Shown here in pieces: positions 1,649-59,028 of a stretch of 64,000 nucleotides of DNA. The DNA lies in NCBI GenBank assembly GCA_047495785.1, contig JBLDXI010000019.1, positions 62,001 to 126,000 on the forward strand, written 5' to 3'. This stretch comes from Lepidodermella squamata. Lineage: Eukaryota; Animalia; Gastrotricha. Made by a program: the position numbers and the translations under genes. The notes below the pieces were generated by a model, which was not told where the DNA came from, made no database searches, and saw only the letters and a list, made by a program, of their open reading frames with translations. The first letter of the stretch is position 1, and every line of letters begins with the position of its first letter.

Positions 1649-2580
1649 ATGGTATTCACCCCTATCGTCAAATCGAGAAGTATAGTTCTATCGTTGGCCT
1701 TGCTCAATCAACTACTACATCGAATAGAAGCGAAAAAAAGCAAAAAGCCGACTGCTCCGGCCAACAATGTGGACAGCCAACTTCCACCGACAACACCAAG
1801 ACAGCTGACTTGGTTGGAGCAAGCCTATGTAATGGAACCGTATATACATTACAAGCACCCGAGGGGACTGATGTTTATAAGAAGACGCGGGGTCAAAGCG
1901 AAAACTATTAGCGAGAAGATATCAAAGTTTCTTGTTAGAGTCATCGACTTATCACCATTCAACCAGGATTTAAAGTCCGAAATGGCAGCGTATCGCGATA
2001 AAACACACAAGTTTCACTATGGGGAACATATTCTTCCTGGAGTGATCACGGAAGGGGAGAAAAGGTATATAAGCTACTTTTCTACGCTAAAACGTTATCC
2101 GAATTATTCAAGTATGACGACAAGTATGATTACCTTAAAAGCATTGAATGGGCCACGCGAGGCAGCGAAGTTGAAACTCAGCCGACGGAAGAAACGCCCT
2201 TAGAGCCAGTAGAGCCGACGTTCACATGGAGAAAAGCTGGCTGGGTTATTGCCAGCATAGTTGCCAGTGTGATTGTATCAGCCGCAACAGTGGCATTGTT
2301 CGTTTATGTCGTCAACTCAATTCGAGCCAATGATATGAAGACAAGAATGCAGCAGCTTAATAACGCAAATAACACTAGATCATCGTACGCCGAGGGACGA
2401 CTCATCCGTTCGGTATCGAATTTACTTCGTGGCTCGGTAAATTTGAAAATGCTAGAACGGTTTGAGGAAAAGGATCATTTCCCGAGACCCATCGGAAGAT
2501 TAGCTACAAGTGATCGATTCGTACTGCTCAGCTACCTGAGGGACGATTCAATAGACAACTATGATCCTCTTAGTGATTAA
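1649..2580 (+). CDS. Unknown protein with hydrophobic N-terminus and a C-terminal TM segment; apparently split by a frameshift near 2050-2070
   Basis: 184-aa ORF in frame 2 overlaps a frame-1 open stretch 2002-2580 containing WVIASIVASVIVSAATVALFVYVV; no homolog recognised. Confidence 0.35.
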
Positions 2581-2727
2581 TGTTAAGAGAATAAAACTAA
2601 TTCCCATTTGTTCGATTTTTCAATCACACTATTCCTCCATTCCTTTACGAGCTTCGAAATGTGGCAAAGGATTTTTTGAATGAGGCCTTGCCTTTCTCCG
2701 CACTGCGAAATACCGCAAACTAATGTA

Positions 2728-2897
2728 CAGGGTGGCGACAAAATTCCGCAGAATTCGATGCGCATCAGTTTAATGAAGAGTTTTAAGAAGTTAAAGAATT
2801 TCAAGCAGTCTTTTGCCAATGGAACTCCTCAATTTCTTAAACTCATTAAAAGGATGCGCATCGAATTCGCCTTCTGCGGAATTTTTTGGCCACCCTG
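2728..2897. mobile_element. Tc1/mariner-type MITE, 170 bp
   Basis: TA|CAGGGTGGC...GCCACCCTG|TA termini; imperfect inverted repeat continues inward (AAAATTCCGCAGAA, GAATTCGATGCGCATC). Confidence 0.85.
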
Positions 2898-3304
2898 TAT
2901 AATTCGGGTCACGCACCCGCTTTTTCCGAAGCCGACAAATTACGTCACGTAACTTCTCCGAATGATCGAAACGATGTTTAATAATGAGTACACGATTTTA
3001 ATTTATAGCGAAGAGAGATACGCGAGAAACAGGTTTCTCTGTTGCTTTTTATTATTCTTGTTCCGTCACCGGTAACTCCTGAGTGGAAAATCATTATCAA
3101 TAAATTTTGAACAAGAAACACGTGGAGCTGATGAAAGTGGCCACGATAAGCGAAAGGAAATTCATGGTACAATTGCATGAAATATATCGGAACTGATAAG
3201 ACCTCGTTCTCACACCTGAATTCGTAGAGTCACATGGGGCATTTTCGTCAACATTGATGAAATATATTTGCCTAATACTTATCGGGTTTCTAAAAGGGTA
3301 ACAC

Positions 3305-4085
3305 ATGTCTGATTTATCGAAACCAGCAGAAGCGTCGCCTGAAAATAGCCGACAAAGCCTGCAAGCTGTAGTCAATTTCACAAATCGAGCCCCCACTGGT
3401 CAAAATAACAATCCTCCGCCTGAGTATAGCGAGGTTCACGGTCCTAGCGCGACCATTACCTTCCATCCAGTTAGCCCTCCTCAGGGTCCGGTTGTGGTTG
3501 TGACATCGCCAGCCCAATGCCTGCCTCCCCTATCCGCTGCGGAGGTGTTTCAGTCCCGGATAATAACTGGTTACGGCTTACTCCGTTTTGCCCAAATGGT
3601 GAGCTTGATTGGCGCATCCACCTTGATACAATTTTTTGACTGACATTACAGGTTTTTTCGTTAATTGACTTTTCAATTTTGTGCGGCTTGTTTTCTTACG
3701 TCTGGTCGTGGTTTTATTGGGTATGGCTGTTGATTTTACCGATCTGCAGCCTCGGCTCGTCGATTAACCAGCTCATCAACCACGCGAATCGTTCCTGGGC
3801 TTACGAAGGCGGGTCCGACATAGGATTCGGCATCCTATACGTCATCCACGCTGCCTGTATCGGGCTGGTTTATTACGACTATTATCGATTCGATCACTTC
3901 TTCTATACAGAGACAATTAATGCTGGCATTGTAGGTCGCATCCCTAGTTTATGTGGAATTATGTATTTAATTTTTCCTTGCAACAGGTATTTAGCAGTTT
4001 TCTCGCCGTTTTTTACATAGTCGCGAGTTGCAGCACCTATGGAGGGCATTGGCTAAATCGGAACATGTTCACAAGATTGCAGTGA
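3305..4085 (+). CDS. MARVEL-like 4-TM protein A (exons 3305-3598, 3652-3930, 3987-4085)
   Basis: GT-AG phase-0 introns join in frame; PPPEY N-terminus, RIITGYGLLRFAQ motif, four hydrophobic segments. Confidence 0.8.
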
Positions 4086-4399: not shown

Positions 4400-5145
4400 A
4401 TGGAAACAAACAGCAACTTACCGTACGAAACCTTGCCCTCCCATGGCGCCGCTGTTGTTTTCATGGAAACCCCATCTCAGCCTGCTCAGCCAGCGCGTAA
4501 GCCAGTCAGTCAAGTTTTCGCCGAGCGAATTCGAACACCGTATGGAATCGCTCGAGTCTTACAACTTGTAAATCGCAAATTAATCATAAATAAACGTTGA
4601 GGACAATTTAACTTGAAATTCAAAATTTGCAGGTCATTTCGATGGTGCTATTTGGAATGTGGTTAGCTTTGCTCGCGCAGTATCAATCACAACTGGCAGC
4701 TGTGCTATACACCGGTCCTTTGTGGGTACTTGGCATGTCTATGATTATTATGCCAGCTGGAACAATATCTACTCTTCTATTTCAATTGCTTTATTGGAAA
4801 AATGAGACTTGGGCCTACAAGTGGGGTAATGATATCGGCTTCGCTGTTGGCAACGTCATAAATGCCGGCCTAGGGTCTATCATGTACCTTGTTGTCATTC
4901 CAACTATGGTCGGCTCTGGAATTTCTGTTGAATACTATGCAATCTACTCGGAATCATACATCACCCTTATATTTGCTAGCATGGTAAAACCAAAGGCTAA
5001 TTTCAATTTCGAATTTAATAATTTTTATTGCTTGGGTTTGTAGGGTGTTACAATATTGATGGCGGTTACGCATGTCGTCGTTGGCTGTAGCATTTGCAAA
5101 TTTCACTGTTTGGATAAAAATTTACCTTCAGCGAGACAATCATGA
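4400..5145 (+). CDS. MARVEL-like 4-TM protein B (exons 4400-4567, 4633-4983, 5044-5145)
   Basis: VFAERIRTPYGIARVLQL, WAYxWGxDIGF, C-terminal HCLDKNLP; same intron positions as paralogs. Confidence 0.85.
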
Positions 5146-5664
5146 TCAAAATCGCTACTTACATTTCGAAAAATTCCGAAAGTGTGCCATTGCGTTGTTA
5201 TAATTGGTGACTGAATAAAAACCAACAAAATATCACGTGATTTTCTTATCCCTCGTCTGCCATAATTTTTTCAGTTATTCCCAATAGTTTGACAATATTC
5301 ATGGGAAAACTCGTTTACTACCTACGTTCGGTGAGTTTTTGAAAATTCGCTGTTGGAGTCCTTCCTCTTATTTTATCAAGAATAGGCGTTGAAGGCAATG
5401 ACTTCAAGTCCGGTTTTAACGCCCTATCAGCCGTTTTTTGTTTAGAATTGAGCTATGAATGTCTCGGCAGATAATGAATCCGAATTAATCCAGATGATTC
5501 ACTGGCTGCTTGCACCAGAAAAAACGGATGGTGCGTGGGTTCTTTATCGCGCGGATTCTTATCAATATATTTCCCCCTCGTTTCGCCTTATATTATCGAC
5601 CAAAATCCAGCATTTCATCGCCCATTTACCGCCCATTATTTTATTTTTTTGAACCTCTCTTCCT

Positions 5665-6599
5665 ATGGATCCAACCAAACAAGGGGAAGTTCAGCCAGGT
5701 GGCGTAGCCACTGTGTCCTATGCAGCTCCAGCGGGTCAAATGCCACCAGCCCCTAACTATAGTGTCTACCAGCCTCAACAACAAGCTTATCCATACCCGC
5801 AGCAGCCTGGTCAGCAGGTCTACAGCCAGTACCCGCAGCAGCCTGGTCAAGCTGTTTACTATGCCCAGCAGCAACCTGGGGCTGTAGCCTACCAACCGGG
5901 GGCTCAACAGGTCGTCATCATGTCTGGTGGGGCGCCAACGAGCTACCCAGCGCTTACACGTAGGCCTGCCGGGGAGGTTTTCGCTGAGCGGATTAGAACA
6001 CCCTATGGATTTCTTCGAGTTCTCCAGCTGGTAATGAAATTCACGCTAAAAAATCGTTAATTATCGAAGGTTTTTCCAGCTTTTGTCTATTGTAATTCTT
6101 GGCTTATGGGCGGGATTGCTCGCTCAAGAACAAGATACTTCATCGACCAATCTTAAATGGCTAGGTTGGGAATGCTGGTACTATTGGCTGGAGATGCTTA
6201 TTTTGCCCCTTGCGAGTATCGCCACTGCTCTGCAACAGCTTTTCAGCTGGAACGCTCGATCCTGGGCATATGGAGGTGGCTCTGACATTGGATATGGCTT
6301 TGGATATCTGATTTACACTGCCGTCATCGCCATCATCTATATGGTTTTCTACCCGATCATAGCTAGTCCGTATAATAAATGGTTATACTACTGGCAGCTT
6401 TTTTCCCCAAGTTACCTTGAGCTTGTTTACGCAAACATGGTTAGTTTAATTCAAAATAGGGTTCAGCAACATTTTAACCAATTTTTCTACCTTTTTTCAG
6501 GCTATTAGTGGAATCATGTCCTTCCTCTATTTCATTGCTGGCTTCAGCATTTCATGCTGTCATTGCTTGGACTTCAATTTGCCGACGCCGCGTTACTAA
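5665..6599 (+). CDS. MARVEL-like 4-TM protein C with P/Q/Y-rich N-terminus (exons 5665-6030, 6080-6439, 6501-6599)
   Basis: YPQQPGQ repeats, VFAERIRTPYGFLRVLQL, WAYGGGSDIGY, HCLDFNLP; AATAAA near 6743. Confidence 0.85.
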
Positions 6600-7161
6600 A
6601 CCAAACCTCGAGCCATGTATCGGGTATCGAAGAACCAAGCTACATAAAATCTGATTACCAGTGAATTATAGCGTCTTTTTGCTTTAGGTATAGTATTAGG
6701 CCTTATACGCGCTAATCTTATGCTTCTATTTTCATGCTGCGGAATAAAGATTATAATGGAATTCGATTCCAAAGATGTTTAACCATGGACATCAGGGGCG
6801 CCAATCTGGATTGACGAACTGTGGTAGCCTTTTCGTGGCTTAATCGAACACATATTTTGTCTCATTTCAGTCAAAGTTCGACCCATCCTGAATCCAAGAA
6901 ACTTGAAGGATAGAGCTCAGAAATTTGAAAGCACAATTTGTCGTAGCTGACAACAAATTGAATATCATCATATGACCATTCCGCCTGAAATAGACAAAAT
7001 GTGGCTGTTTTAGCAATGCTAAAAATAAACTTTTATCACTTATTATCTTTCGCTCGGTGCTACCGCATTTCCAGGAAATTTCTGCCTTGATATCATCGCG
7101 TTGCGTTTTTGTTCGCTGTAAATGACATAATTTTTTTCAAAAAGCAAGAACACTTTCAAGC

Positions 7162-24689: not shown

Positions 24690-27600
24690 ATGATTGGCTG
24701 TCTACAAGTTGGACCGACTTATTTCCTGATCCTAACGCTGGTTGCGCTGGCTAAAAACGCGTTTTCGGAAAATGTAAGTTCATGAAAGTACGAAAGGAGT
24801 ACTAATCAATATGGGTTGGTGAAAGTTTGCGTACCTACATAACTCATCGAGATCTATTCCCAGAAAAATCAGCAAGTTCGCAACCCTCACAGTTTGGGAG
24901 ATGCGCGTGGTGTTCAAATTAGTACCTGTTCAAAATTGTACCGGAGTACGGTAGAGAATTTATTAACGAGCCAAAACTAAAACGTAAAAAAAACGTGACA
25001 TTTAGCAGAGCGTAGTTTCGATCTACAGACCTCTGGGTTATGGGCCCAGCGCGCTTCCACTGCGCCACTCTGCTTGTCTGAATTTAATCGGATTTCCTCA
25101 TATTATCAAACAACTTGGCATACAAAGACTCTCCTATCCTCATCAAGAGACCCCCAAGACCACAGTCCCCCAAAGACTCACAGGGAATTCAGGAATTCTG
25201 GTTTTGAGCAATTGCACACATCCTTGAACCTTTACCAGCTTGAAGCTCGTGCCCAAATGGACCATCTTCTATGAATTCCACGAATTTCACATCAATAAAT
25301 GAAGTTTTCATCTGACCCACCTTTGGCTATTATGATATCTACTTTGAGGAGAACTAGTAGTGGATCTCGAAATATCTGTGAATCTACGAATTTTACAGTC
25401 CGGCTCAGTAGCTTAGTGGTAGAGCGTCTGTCTCGTAAACAGAAGATCGCGGGTTCAATTCCCGCCTGGGCCTAGTCTCTCTTTTATACTCCCTACTAGA
25501 AATATCAAGAGTGAAACAAGCAGACTTGATCATGTTTACTGAAGCTTCTAACGGCTGGAAGCAGTGGCGTGCTTCTGTAACTCAGCGACTTGAGAGCCGG
25601 GCTTGGCGAATGGGTGGCCGGTGGGAGCCCTGTCTGCGGATGTCACATGTCGATCGAGCGCCCCGTGTAAGTACGCCATCAACATGGTCGGTGCGGCGGA
25701 GGCCGTACTGCCCAGGTTGCGTAATGACACGTCAAAGGTCAGGTCCTGACGGAAGCAGCCTAACGATGTGCGTGGTGAGCGGTACCGGGACAGTGCTTGT
25801 GAATGTGCGCCGTAGTCAGCCCATCGGTTCACGCGGACCCAAATCTTTTTTTCTAATTTTTTCTAATTTTTTTAATTATTAAATTTCGTTGTTACTTATT
25901 TATTTTTTTATTTATTTTTTATTTTTTTAGATTGAAGGCTGCTCGTTGCCGAAAATTGAAAACGGCGCTTTGACTAACTTGAATGGCGAAAAATATGTCC
26001 TTCCTTCAGCCCCTTTTGACGCCCGGCTGCGAATTGCCTGCAAGCGAAATTTCGTTGTCCGGGGCTGGGGTCAATTTGTCTGCACCCGATCTGGCCGCTG
26101 GTCGCCCGAACCCGGTGACTGCAAACCCGGCCGGCGCCAGACCAGCTACCCTGAGGACTATCGGTACCACGTTGCTGAGTTATGGCTCAACAAAACTGTA
26201 TCCTACGAAATATCGCCGGAATTGAAGTCGGATTTCGCGACTAGCATGACGCAGGCGATGAAACTTGTCGCAAGCAACACCTGTCTATCTTTTCGTGATA
26301 TCAGCAAGGATCGCCTACCCGACGGCCTTGTTCGAATCCAGCCGGATGACAGTGGCAGCGAAAGGTGCTCAGCCTCGTTTGGCAAGGCCCCCGAAGGCCG
26401 GCAAACCATCGATTTAGCTTCCTCTTGCTTCTCAGATTCAACCCAAGTTTATTTTACGCTGTTATCAACTATCGGCCTCGTTCAGGAACATCGCCGACCT
26501 GACCGTGATGACTACATTGAAATAGTTTGGGCTAACATAGCTGACAACGCGAAATTTTTGTTCGAAAAGCATCGAATAATCGACGAACGAATCGCAGCCT
26601 TGCCATATGAGTTCTCGTCAGTCATGCATTTCTCTGCTACGGAGTATGCTAAATCGCCAGGTCTCGTGACGATTCGACTGAGAAACAGCACGCAGTCAAG
26701 GTCGTTTGGCGGCAAGGTTCCTACCAAAACAGACTTCGATAAACTTAACGCTCTATACTGCGCTTCACCCCGGAATGATAACGAAGATCTTGGTACCTCA
26801 AGATCGCCAGTATTGCTAGCTGGAATGTCCTCAACGAGCTCTACTGTAACATCGACTACTACTACAACTACCAGGCCAACCACTACTACTAGTACTACAA
26901 CTACCACCACTAGGCCAAGCACCTTGAAAGTTGAAACCACGACCTTGAGAAGTACGACTACAACCCCAGTGCCAACAACTGTTCGATCGACTGCAGCCGC
27001 GACTACGACCTCGGTACCAACAACTGTCCGATCAACTTCAGCCGCGACTTCAACGGCAAAATTGACCACAGTTAGAATCCCTGAAACATCACTCGCTACA
27101 TCCTCTGTTCGGCTCGTTACGAATCAAACTCAGACCACGATTCTGCCACGAAACGGCTCAGTTACAACGCTGAAACCCACGATAGCTAGTACTTCGACGA
27201 TGAAGGCTGATGTTCCTTTAACTACAGTCAGGGCAATTCTTACAACGGTTTCGACTTCGCCGATGACTTCCACTAGGCCTTCTTTGCCATTGACAACAGC
27301 TGTAGTTACCAGCAGAGAGACTGAAACTTCTCGTCCGCGAGAAAACGTGACAACTAACTTAGTTCCTACTACGGTTGTAGGCCCGAGAAGCAACTATAGC
27401 ACTACGATTTCGGCCAGTTCAACCAAAGCCCCTTCTATGTTGACTACTAGAAGCTTCAGGCCTGATAATTCAACAATTAAATTTGAAAATTTTACTACAG
27501 CGAGCTCGGGAAATTTCATCAATATTACGACCAAAGCATCTCCAACGTCATCAACTCGATTTTTCGGGTTAGATATTGCAAATCCTGGCAATTCGTCAGC

Positions 27601-49458: not shown

Positions 49459-49531
49459 TATTATGATCCCTACTTCTCTAGACGTTGTAGTGGATCCCAA
49501 AGTTACTGTGAATCTATGAATTTTCCTCTCA

Positions 49532-49603
49532 GGCTCAGTAGCTTAGTGGTAGAGCGTCTGTCTCGTAAACAGAAGATCGCGGGTTCAATTCCCGCCTGGG
49601 CCT
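49532..49603 (+). tRNA. tRNA-Thr(CGT), cassette 2
   Basis: Same sequence as 25402-25473. Confidence 0.96.
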
Positions 49604-49682
49604 AGTCTCTCTTTTATACTCCCTACTAGAAATATCAAGAGTGAAACAAGCAGACTTGATCATGTTTACTGAAGCTTCTAAC

Positions 49683-49976
49683 GGCTGGAAGCAGTGGCGT
49701 GCTTCTGTGACTCAGCGACTTGAGGGCCGGGCTTGGCGAATGGGTGGCCGGTGGGAGCCCTGTCTGCGGATGTCACATGTCGATCGAGCGCCCCGTGTAA
49801 GTACGCCATCAACATGGTCGGTGCGGCGGAGGCCGTACTGCCCAGGTTGCGTAATGACACGTCAAAGGTCAGGTCCTGACGGAAGCAGCCTAACGATGTG
49901 CGTGGTGAGCGGTACCGGGACAGTGCTTGTGAATGTGCGCCGCAGTCAGCCCATCGGTTCACACGGACCCAAATCT
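49683..49976 (+). ncRNA. RN7SL: 7SL / SRP RNA, cassette 2
   Basis: Near-identical to 25553-25846; oligo-T terminator. Confidence 0.93.
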
Positions 49977-50493
49977 TTTTTCAGGATTTTTATTCAAATT
50001 ATTCATTCGAATTTTTTAGTTTAATTTCAACTTAATTTTGTTGGAAATATGTCTGCAGACTCCAGACGTAAGTGTCCATGGGGGAAATGCTAATAAGTAT
50101 AGCGGTGAAGTAGGGTGGCGGTATTAATGTCTGGCAGAATCGATTCACGGACGCGTTTTCAATGGAATAAGCCCAAGTGGTGAAATGGCGGAAACTAGGA
50201 GAGCCAATCTAGCTAATTGAATACATATGCTGAGCATTGCTTAAGTCACCGTAATCAGAGTTAAATTGAGCTGCCTGCTACCTCCTCTTAGCACTTTCAC
50301 GATTGATTCTCTCCGATGATATCTACATAACATAAAATGCAAGTCGAACTTATACTGTCGTAAATTGGAATGGAAAGGACAATATCCGTTTTTCATTACG
50401 AAATGCTTTCGTCAAAATGCTTCATCAAACCCCAATAGGGTACAGACATTCAACCGCAAAGAAGTCTCAAATCAGTCTCAAGTCTCAAAAGAA

Positions 50494-52914: not shown

Positions 52915-52986
52915 TAGCAGAGCGTAGTTTCGATCTACAGACCTCTGGGTTATGGGCCCAGCGCGCTTCCACTGCGCCACTCTGCT
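52915..52986 (-). tRNA. Initiator tRNA-Met(CAT)
   Basis: Same sequence as 25003-25074. Confidence 0.97.
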
Positions 52987-53155: not shown

Positions 53156-53227
53156 GGCTCAGTAGCTTAGTGGTAGAGCGTCTGTCTCGTAAACAGAAGA
53201 TCGCGGGTTCAATTCCCGCCTGGGCCT
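53156..53227 (+). tRNA. tRNA-Thr(CGT), cassette 3
   Basis: Same sequence as 25402-25473. Confidence 0.96.
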
Positions 53228-53307: not shown

Positions 53308-53601
53308 GGCTGGAAGCAGTGGCGTGCTTCTGTGACTCAGCGACTTGAGGGCCGGGCTTGGCGAATGGGTGGCCGGTGGGAGCCCTGTCTGCGGATGTCA
53401 CATGTCGATCGAGCGCCCCGTGTAAGTACGCCATCAACATGGTCGGTGCGGCGGAGGCCGTACTGCCCAGGTTGCGTAATGACACGTCAAAGGTCAGGTC
53501 CTGACGGAAGCAGCCTAACGATGTGCGTGGTGAGCGGTACCGGGACAGTGCTTGTGAATGTGCGCCGCAGTCAGCCCATCGGTTCATCTGAACCCAAATC
53601 T
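53308..53601 (+). ncRNA. RN7SL: 7SL / SRP RNA, cassette 3 (3' variant TTCATCTGAACCC)
   Basis: Near-identical to other copies; oligo-T terminator. Confidence 0.92.
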
Positions 53602-53863
53602 TTTTTCTAATTTTTGAATTAGATTCAAATTACCTATCAGCTACCAAGTTTATATTTTCCGTCTTTTTTAATTATTGAAGTTGTGCGTCATATGAGTCCA
53701 ACGTTTTGAGGGCATTACAAAGTCAAGAACGATCATTGATCGCGCTATGAGATGAGATTTTTAAATTAAAATAATTCTTACATCACGATGAGAATAAAAA
53801 GGTAAAAGGAAATTAAGAGTTGTATAAACACCACTGTTGTTGATGGCTGAACAAACAAGCCGG

Positions 53864-58458: not shown

Positions 58459-58582
58459 AGGCTAGCTAAATAAATAAAAGTGACTCGGTTATGGCAATTT
58501 CTCTTCATTTCAGAATAAAACCTTCCTTAGCTAAGGTAAGATTTTTTAATTCGTAAAAAAATGAAAACGTGAGTACGAAAAA

Positions 58583-58876
58583 AGACTTGGGTCCGTGTGG
58601 ACCGATGGGCTGAATGCGGCGCACATTCACAAGCACTGTCCCGGTACCGCTCACCACGCACATCGTTAGGCTGCTTCCGTCAGGACCTGACCTTTGACGT
58701 GTCATTACGCAACCTGGGCAGTACGGCCTCCGCCGCACCGACCATGTTGATGGCGTACTTACACGGGGCGCTCGATCGACATGTGACATCCAGAGACAGG
58801 TCTCCCACCGGCCACCCATTCGCCAAGCCCGGCCCTCAAGTCGCTGAGTCACAGAAGCACGCCACTGCTTCCAGCC
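58583..58876 (-). ncRNA. RN7SL: 7SL / SRP RNA, cassette 4 (most divergent copy)
   Basis: Reverse complement of other copies with a few substitutions; oligo-T terminator. Confidence 0.92.
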
Positions 58877-58956: not shown

Positions 58957-59028
58957 AGGCCCAGGCGGGAATTGAACCCGCGATCTTCTGTTTACGAGAC
59001 AGACGCTCTACCACTAAGCTACTGAGCC
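58957..59028 (-). tRNA. tRNA-Thr(CGT), cassette 4
   Basis: Reverse complement of 25402-25473. Confidence 0.96.

Follow-up and report, generated by a model that had tools for sequence, protein, structure and literature searches.

Do the 7SL genes of the gastrotrich Lepidodermella squamata depart from the GNRA tetraloop expected at the tip of helix 8 in metazoan SRP RNA and, if they do, have the proteins that meet this loop changed along with it? The question arises from a 64,000-nt stretch of contig JBLDXI010000019.1 (C19:62001-126000 of a 121 Mb assembly; hereafter the window). A preliminary description of the window, made from its sequence alone, reported four 7SL copies with a UGAC helix-8 loop and a GGAG helix-6 loop, likened the helix-8 stem to bacterial ones, and proposed a lineage-specific rewiring of the S domain, with possible counterpart changes in SRP19, SRP54 or SRalpha. 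An Rfam scan confirmed both loops in all four copies at the positions given below.

The window contains four full-length Metazoa_SRP (RF00017) genes, which score 173.5–181.8 bits in cmscan against a gathering score of 70 and align over model positions 1–299 of 299. Copy 1 (25554..25848, + strand, 295 nt, 181.8 bits) carries its helix-8 apical tetraloop UGAC at 25747..25750 (+), with base 25748 as loop position 2, and its helix-6 tetraloop GGAG, of the GNAR type, at 25698..25701 (+). On the same strand the helix-8 loop is flanked by GGTCAGGTCC at 25737-25746 and GGAAGCAGCC at 25751-25760. For the remaining copies we combined the model match with an alignment of the copies: copy 2 lies at 49684..49978 (+, 180.4 bits; UGAC at 49877-49880), copy 3 at 53309..53603 (+, 179.4 bits; UGAC at 53502-53505) and copy 4 at 58581..58875 (−, 173.5 bits; UGAC at 58679-58682). 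Helix 8 of each window copy reads GGUCAGGUCC-UGAC-GGAAGCAGCC, helix 6 ends in GGAG, and the alignment shows no differences among the four copies in the S domain, the helix-6 loop included. In the alignment to RF00017, UGAC faces the model's helix-8 GAAA in all four copies, and the third loop base alone agrees with it. The loop consensus of the metazoan model is upper-case GAAA, and only the 3-bp apical stem of helix 8 is variable there; in copy 1 this stem is UCC/GGA and the loop is closed by a C-G pair.

Elsewhere these genes have the expected parts of a 7SL RNA. Helices 3 and 4 of the Alu domain are paired in the window copies, and the UGUNR motif, aligned to the model's CUGUAA, is UGUAA in copy 1 and UGUGA in copies 2–4. 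The helix-6 hairpin folds with z = −4.15. Both internal loops in helix 8, the symmetric (AGG/AGCA) and the asymmetric one, which make up the SRP54 binding site, are present, and a T-run terminator follows copy 1.

The unusual loop is shared by every 7SL gene in the genome. A covariance-model search of the assembly returned 22 full-length 7SL copies distributed over five contigs, all above threshold (161.6–183.3 bits), and the exact pattern CAGGTCC-NNNN-GGAAGCAG occurs at the same 22 places only, against 0 for the reversed control in the whole assembly. The loop is UGAC in 8/22 copies and UAAC in 14/22, on the UCC/GGA stem in either case, with C at position 4 in 22/22, and UGAC is the minority form in the genome: seven UGAC copies lie within ~100 kb of C19 (the four in the window among them) and one lies on C26. 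The GNRA tetraloop with an adenosine at position 4, expected of helix 8 in metazoan SRP RNA, is absent throughout (0/22 full-length copies in the whole assembly). A looser search of the whole assembly for the hairpin CAGG-NNN-GNRA-NNN-AGCAG gave 25 matches against 18 in the control, which is chance level. The sole match with a complementary 3-bp stem, at locus L170, was considered as a hidden GNRA-type 7SL and rejected, having no Rfam match at E up to 1. The presence of U-R-A-C at the same place in all 22 copies argues that the loop is not a product of chance, and the non-GNRA loop, a departure that is genome-wide and holds at the level of the lineage, sits on a 7SL that is canonical in its other parts. 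The preliminary description had advised a look for GNRA-type 7SL genes elsewhere in the genome, with the objection in mind that a canonical GNRA copy could be the expressed one; this objection fails because no GNRA-type 7SL exists in the assembly.

Differences among the 22 copies indicate that these genes are under constraint at the RNA level. All copies are exactly 295 nt long, with no indels in 22/22, and a T-run lies directly 3′ of the gene in every one. The S domain is nearly invariant and the differences cluster in helix 5 and the Alu domain; the GGAG helix-6 loop is the same in 22/22 copies, and helix 8 (columns 175–217) varies only at loop position 2 (8 G, 14 A) and in one singleton at column 216. 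Compensatory double changes are found at pair 53/286 (C-G versus G-C, 7 copies), pair 139/154 (U-A to C-G, 3 copies) and pair 7/20 (1 copy). The UGAC and UAAC variants have an identical predicted minimum-free-energy helix-8 fold, made up of a 6-bp stem, an asymmetric loop, a 4-bp stem, a 4×4 symmetric loop, a 3-bp stem and the tetraloop. One copy, L007, carries the loop G on the backbone of the UAAC subfamily. This combination suggests that the G/A state is not strictly bound to one gene lineage, as expected of an unconstrained N position.

The copies also differ in what lies upstream of them. A tRNA-Thr(CGU) gene at 25402..25473 (+; ARAGORN, with an Rfam tRNA score of 74.8 bits) precedes copy 1 by 80 nt on that strand, and ARAGORN places equivalent tRNA genes by copy 2 (49531-49604, +), copy 3 (53156-53227, +) and copy 4 (58957-59028, −). 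Upstream of the tRNA-Thr/7SL cassette of copy 1 is a divergent tRNA-Met(CAU) at 25003..25074 (−), and a second one occurs at 52915-52986 (−), both found by Rfam and ARAGORN. Across the assembly, 15/22 7SL genes have a same-strand tRNA gene 67–80 nt upstream (13 tRNA-Thr(CGU) and 2 tRNA-Glu(CUC)), and 11 of these 15, including two in the window, have a divergent tRNA-Met(CAU) further upstream. The tRNA-Thr-linked copies share a conserved block, aagtttac.gaagcttct, just 5′ of the 7SL start. Among the seven copies with no upstream tRNA, six (L012, L015, L017, L020, L021 and L022, all of the UAAC type) carry at about −30 (~1465-1475 of the oriented locus) a TATA-like box that reads tataaaa, tataaa or tacaaaa, and L007 has neither an upstream tRNA nor an obvious TATA box. 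The tRNA-linked and TATA-box copies suggest that the same RNA gene occurs with two upstream promoter architectures.

Public sequence runs recover the UAAC form. No public run contains at least half of the sampled words of the stretch, and the runs with partial shares include metatranscriptomes of activated sludge, roots and sediment. Four runs from four studies were aligned to the window, all of them consisting of contigs rather than raw reads, so that minor variants drop out. Base 25748 reads A, which gives UAAC, in 4/4 runs, two of which are on record as RNA. Each of these two RNA-record runs contributes one UAAC contig lying wholly within the gene (X2, 25562-25809; X10, 25601-25831), and the tRNA, spacer and trailer have no coverage in either, a restriction to the gene body that fits a mature RNA. 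The differences of X10 and of a further run, X19, from the window (25606 G>C, 25614 G>C, 25636-25637 GC>CT and 25720 C>T) are the signature of the genome's UAAC subfamily. Two differences in X2 (25610 A>C and 25614 G>T) occur in 0/22 genomic copies, which suggests a related strain or species that also has UAAC. In X19, one contig agrees with the copy-1-specific trailer with zero mismatches, at a depth far higher over the tRNA and the 7SL body than over the spacer, and at 25606 and 25614 contigs with helix-5 letters typical of the UGAC subfamily account for two thirds of the depth. The UGAC loop itself was not seen among the contigs of the four runs; since contigs lose minor variants, its absence there says nothing firm on whether the window copies are silent. 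A separate X19 contig (depth 102, with 26 nt on its shorter side) joins the tRNA-Thr 3′ end at 25473 to 25553, skipping the 79-nt spacer; this weakly supported join could be an assembly or ligation chimera, or reflect another genomic arrangement.

What the loop does in other particles sets the scale of the departure. Binding of SRP19 brings about a non-canonical A-A pair between an A of the helix-8 loop and the third-position A of the helix-6 GNAR loop, by which the two helices are clamped (PMC4615810), and it is the fourth-position adenosine of the helix-8 GNRA tetraloop that clamps the helix-6 loop (PMC4605306, PMC2905702). A structural survey describes this contact as a conserved A:A-G triple, in which the helix-8 A meets the helix-6 A in a trans Watson-Crick/Watson-Crick pair and turns its Hoogsteen edge to the G of its own loop (bioRxiv 10.1101/098723). 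Here both helix-8 members of the triple are replaced (G1>U and A4>C) and helix 6 keeps GGAG, which makes the loop a genuine deviation from what published work regards as universal among eukaryotes. Changing the human 7SL helix-8 loop from GGAA to UUCG, GUAA or GUCG barely affected SRP-SR GTPase or preprolactin targeting in reconstituted SRP, whereas the same changes carried a 20- to 200-fold cost in E. coli; in mammals the loop has no role in receptor recruitment, which has been taken over by the receptor's MoRF element (PMC6781444).

The replacement loop belongs to a class with known GNRA-like members. In ribosomes and phage boxB RNA, UMAC loops, where M is A or C, are known to build GNRA-like motifs (PMC12550061), and that source cites a study of UNAC loops as mimics of GNRA (Zhao et al. 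2012, Biopolymers 97:617). Like the rRNA and boxB tetraloops, the loop of these 7SL genes combines U-N-A-C with a Watson-Crick closing pair. UAAC is a strict UMAC loop; UGAC (N = G) lies outside the strict class and differs only at the N position.

Does the loop tie these genes to bacteria? URRC is a widespread alternative apical loop of bacterial SRP RNAs (PMC4091067), as the preliminary description had noted for some of them, and the 19-mer CAGGUCC-URAC-GGAAGCAG is identical in >120 bacterial species from several phyla, which suggests that this loop class is compatible with the universally conserved SRP54-binding hairpin. That source mentions URRC for bacteria only; here the host RNA is a metazoan-type 7SL. 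The bacterial look of the stem did not hold up, since the same 10+10 nt also flank GGAA in Archaea_SRP as well as Bacteria_small_SRP matches from metagenomes, and a stem shared with archaea and bacteria points to a universal core rather than to bacterial affinity. When metagenome contigs were scanned for this apical hairpin, its loop left free, together with a 3′ UAA, all 6 matches were SRP RNAs of bacteria or archaea whose loops read GGAA or GAAA, with no eukaryotic relative among them. The likeness to bacterial URRC-loop SRP RNAs (4.5S and scRNA types) thus covers an identical 19-nt apical hairpin. Bacterial SRP has no SRP19, helix 6 or Alu-domain proteins, and its loop tethers FtsY electrostatically; by contrast, the RNA described here is a eukaryotic 7SL, and in mammals a protein element of the receptor replaces that tether (PMC6781444).

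Judged from their sequences, the partner proteins look canonical in SRP19, in the M domain of SRP54 and in the NG domain of SRalpha. Searches gave E-values and bit scores only, and the identities to mammalian proteins given here were judged by eye from alignments. SRP19 is encoded by an intact 154-aa gene on the minus strand (C29:13650-13937), which matches mammalian SRP19 with E = 3e-34 and about half of the aligned residues identical by eye. It retains CIYPxYLNxK..EGRRIP and YRGRVRVQLK, and its RNA-binding motifs are identical to the human ones or conservatively changed. The protein collection contains no entry with exactly this SRP19 sequence. Among other features of the genome, 18S rRNA genes were located, and a search for the nematode SL1 RNA, which had no functioning positive control, gave no match. 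A second, inverted SRP19 copy lies 9 kb away near the contig end (the two copies, at 13.6 kb and 4.6 kb of C29, are L023 1378-1842(−) and L024 1359-1824(+)). The two have the same protein sequence except for a 1-nt frameshift after '...TIEEIR' in one of them, which may be a pseudogene or reflect a long-read indel error. We considered whether the second copy is a divergent paralogue matched to one loop type and ruled this out, the frameshift being the only difference.

SRP54 is encoded by two tandem paralogues ~2.5 kb apart, at ~2536-3889 and 4914-6884 of locus L155 (C20:730000-739000). Their N termini and M-domain ends are different, but a long stretch of the G domain is identical in both and suggests gene conversion or a recent duplication. 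In the complete paralogue about four fifths of the 173 aligned M-domain residues equal the mammalian ones by eye, and the SM and GSG RNA-binding motifs are intact. SRalpha is a single 574-aa open frame (L183 1264-2988(−), on C13). Some three quarters of the aligned residues of its NG domain are identical to human by eye, the lysine equivalent to K537 is retained, and alignment with the human protein shows no regained FtsY-like basic cluster in this domain. The C-terminal part of the NG domain has a 13-residue insertion relative to human, GPQANMTGQALVD. The rewiring suggested in the preliminary description thus finds support in one part and not in another: the loop is non-GNRA in 22/22 copies, but the motifs of SRP19, SRP54 and SRalpha appear intact, and inspection of the RNA-binding motifs of SRP19 and SRP54 turned up no changes to match it. 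A subtle compensation at the SRP19 residues that touch the helix-8 loop is conceivable, with nothing pointing to it.

These results bear on several explanations. That the loop is an artefact, through assembly or sequencing error or through bacterial sequence mimicking URRC, draws on the frequency of the same 19-mer in bacteria, and is effectively refuted: the 22 independent copies are spread over five contigs, each of them is a complete 7SL of metazoan type including its Alu domain, and UAAC recurs independently in four public runs, which come from four studies. Bacterial contamination and horizontal transfer are likewise ruled out by the full metazoan Alu and S-domain architecture. Co-evolved rewiring, in which URRC alters the closure of the S domain or the meeting of SRP with its receptor and SRP19, SRP54 or SRalpha has lineage-specific changes to match, has three points in its favour: both helix-8 bases of the conserved A:A-G triple have changed (bioRxiv 10.1101/098723), co-evolution of helix 8 and Srp54 has a precedent in basidiomycetes (PMC4605306), and in this genome SRP19 is present in a second copy and SRP54 as two tandem paralogues. 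We nevertheless consider it very unlikely. The RNA-binding motifs of SRP19, the M domain of SRP54 and the NG domain of SRalpha show the mammalian-like identities described above, with the K537 equivalent kept and no basic cluster regained; the helix-6 loop remains GGAG; the second SRP19 copy differs by its 1-nt frameshift only; and the loop plays no part in mammalian receptor recruitment (PMC6781444).

A narrower alternative concerns the window itself, whose UGAC copies would be a recently amplified cluster, silent or minor, with the working SRP RNA being the UAAC form encoded elsewhere. UGAC accounts for only 8/22 copies, seven of them within ~100 kb of one contig, and A is the sole letter at 25748 in four runs, two of them RNA, where the differences found alongside it mark the UAAC subfamily. 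However, these runs are contigs from which minor variants have dropped out, so that absence proves nothing; the UGAC copies, which are intact, retain compensatory pairing and share their upstream tRNA cassette and T-run terminator with UAAC copies; and X19 contains contigs with UGAC-subfamily helix-5 letters at two thirds of the depth at 25606 and 25614. We regard a silent cluster as unlikely. The best reading, and the one we hold to be probable, is that the loop is a tolerated mimic of GNRA and that the SRP of this animal is canonical in other respects.

If the loop is such a tolerated mimic, these would be functional, Pol III-transcribed invertebrate SRP RNA genes in which, in this lineage, U-N-A-C has replaced the helix-8 GNRA, as UAAC in most copies and as UGAC in the window cluster. 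Loops of the UNAC/UMAC class are known structural mimics of GNRA, with a U1-C4 contact in place of the sheared G1-A4 pair; here loop position 2, whether G or A, would be a free N position. By analogy with these loops, the hairpin is most likely GNRA-like in shape and still clamped by SRP19 beside the helix-6 GGAG. In place of the canonical A(h6):A(h8)-G(h8) triple there would then be A:C-U, or no triple at all. On their Watson-Crick edges C and A present an identical pattern of amino donor and ring-nitrogen acceptor, from which we infer that an A:C contact with the helix-6 A is conceivable. Given that eukaryotic SRP does without loop-based receptor recruitment and that loop mutations are tolerated in vitro, the substitution would probably be tolerated and near-neutral, and a near-neutral substitution would need no compensating change in SRP19, SRP54 or SRalpha. 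Loss of the clamp could be less innocuous in vivo, where assembly is nucleolar, than in vitro assays on pre-assembled SRP suggest.

Like metazoan SRP RNA (RF00017, for example human 7SL), these genes have an Alu domain with UGUNR, helix 5, a helix 6 with a GNAR (GGAG) loop, the symmetric AGG/AGCA and asymmetric loops of helix 8, a T-run as Pol III terminator, and SRP19, SRP54 and SRalpha partners of canonical form. They differ from it in the apical loop of helix 8, which is U-R-A-C and not GNRA, and in that most copies lie 67–80 nt behind a tRNA gene. SRP RNAs of Basidiomycota offer a parallel as a lineage-specific change in an otherwise universal helix 8. There, however, the Srp54-binding internal loops are altered and the M domain of Srp54 has matching changes (PMC4605306), whereas here the apical loop alone differs and the proteins look unchanged.

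For SRP biology, the genome offers a natural mutant: 22/22 genes lack both helix-8 bases of the clamp, and SRP19, SRP54 and SRalpha appear canonical. In reviews, the helix-8 GNRA and its adenosine clamp with helix 6 are described as features which all SRP RNAs of eukaryotes and archaea conserve and which are key to SRP19-driven assembly. A stronger claim, which we put forward tentatively and think unlikely, is that this is a natural eukaryotic exception to the helix-6/helix-8 adenosine clamp, in which the SRP19-bound A:A-G has become A:C-U or has been abandoned with SRP19 unchanged; if true, the clamp would be dispensable or replaceable in vivo. On the reading of a tolerated mimic, the genes would lend in vivo support to the in vitro mutagenesis of human SRP, according to which dependence on the sequence of the loop has been lost in the eukaryotic particle, and would provide a test case for how far UNAC can replace GNRA in an RNA-RNA-protein kissing contact. 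On the stronger claim, pools of SRP RNA that are used differently might in addition be told apart by loop isoform (UGAC or UAAC) and by promoter type (tRNA-linked or TATA-box). For annotation, SRP RNA gene finders that require GNRA would under-score such genes. The overall biological consequence is probably small: a known RNA has here a variant that is genuine, though modest, and as a quirk of the lineage it is real.
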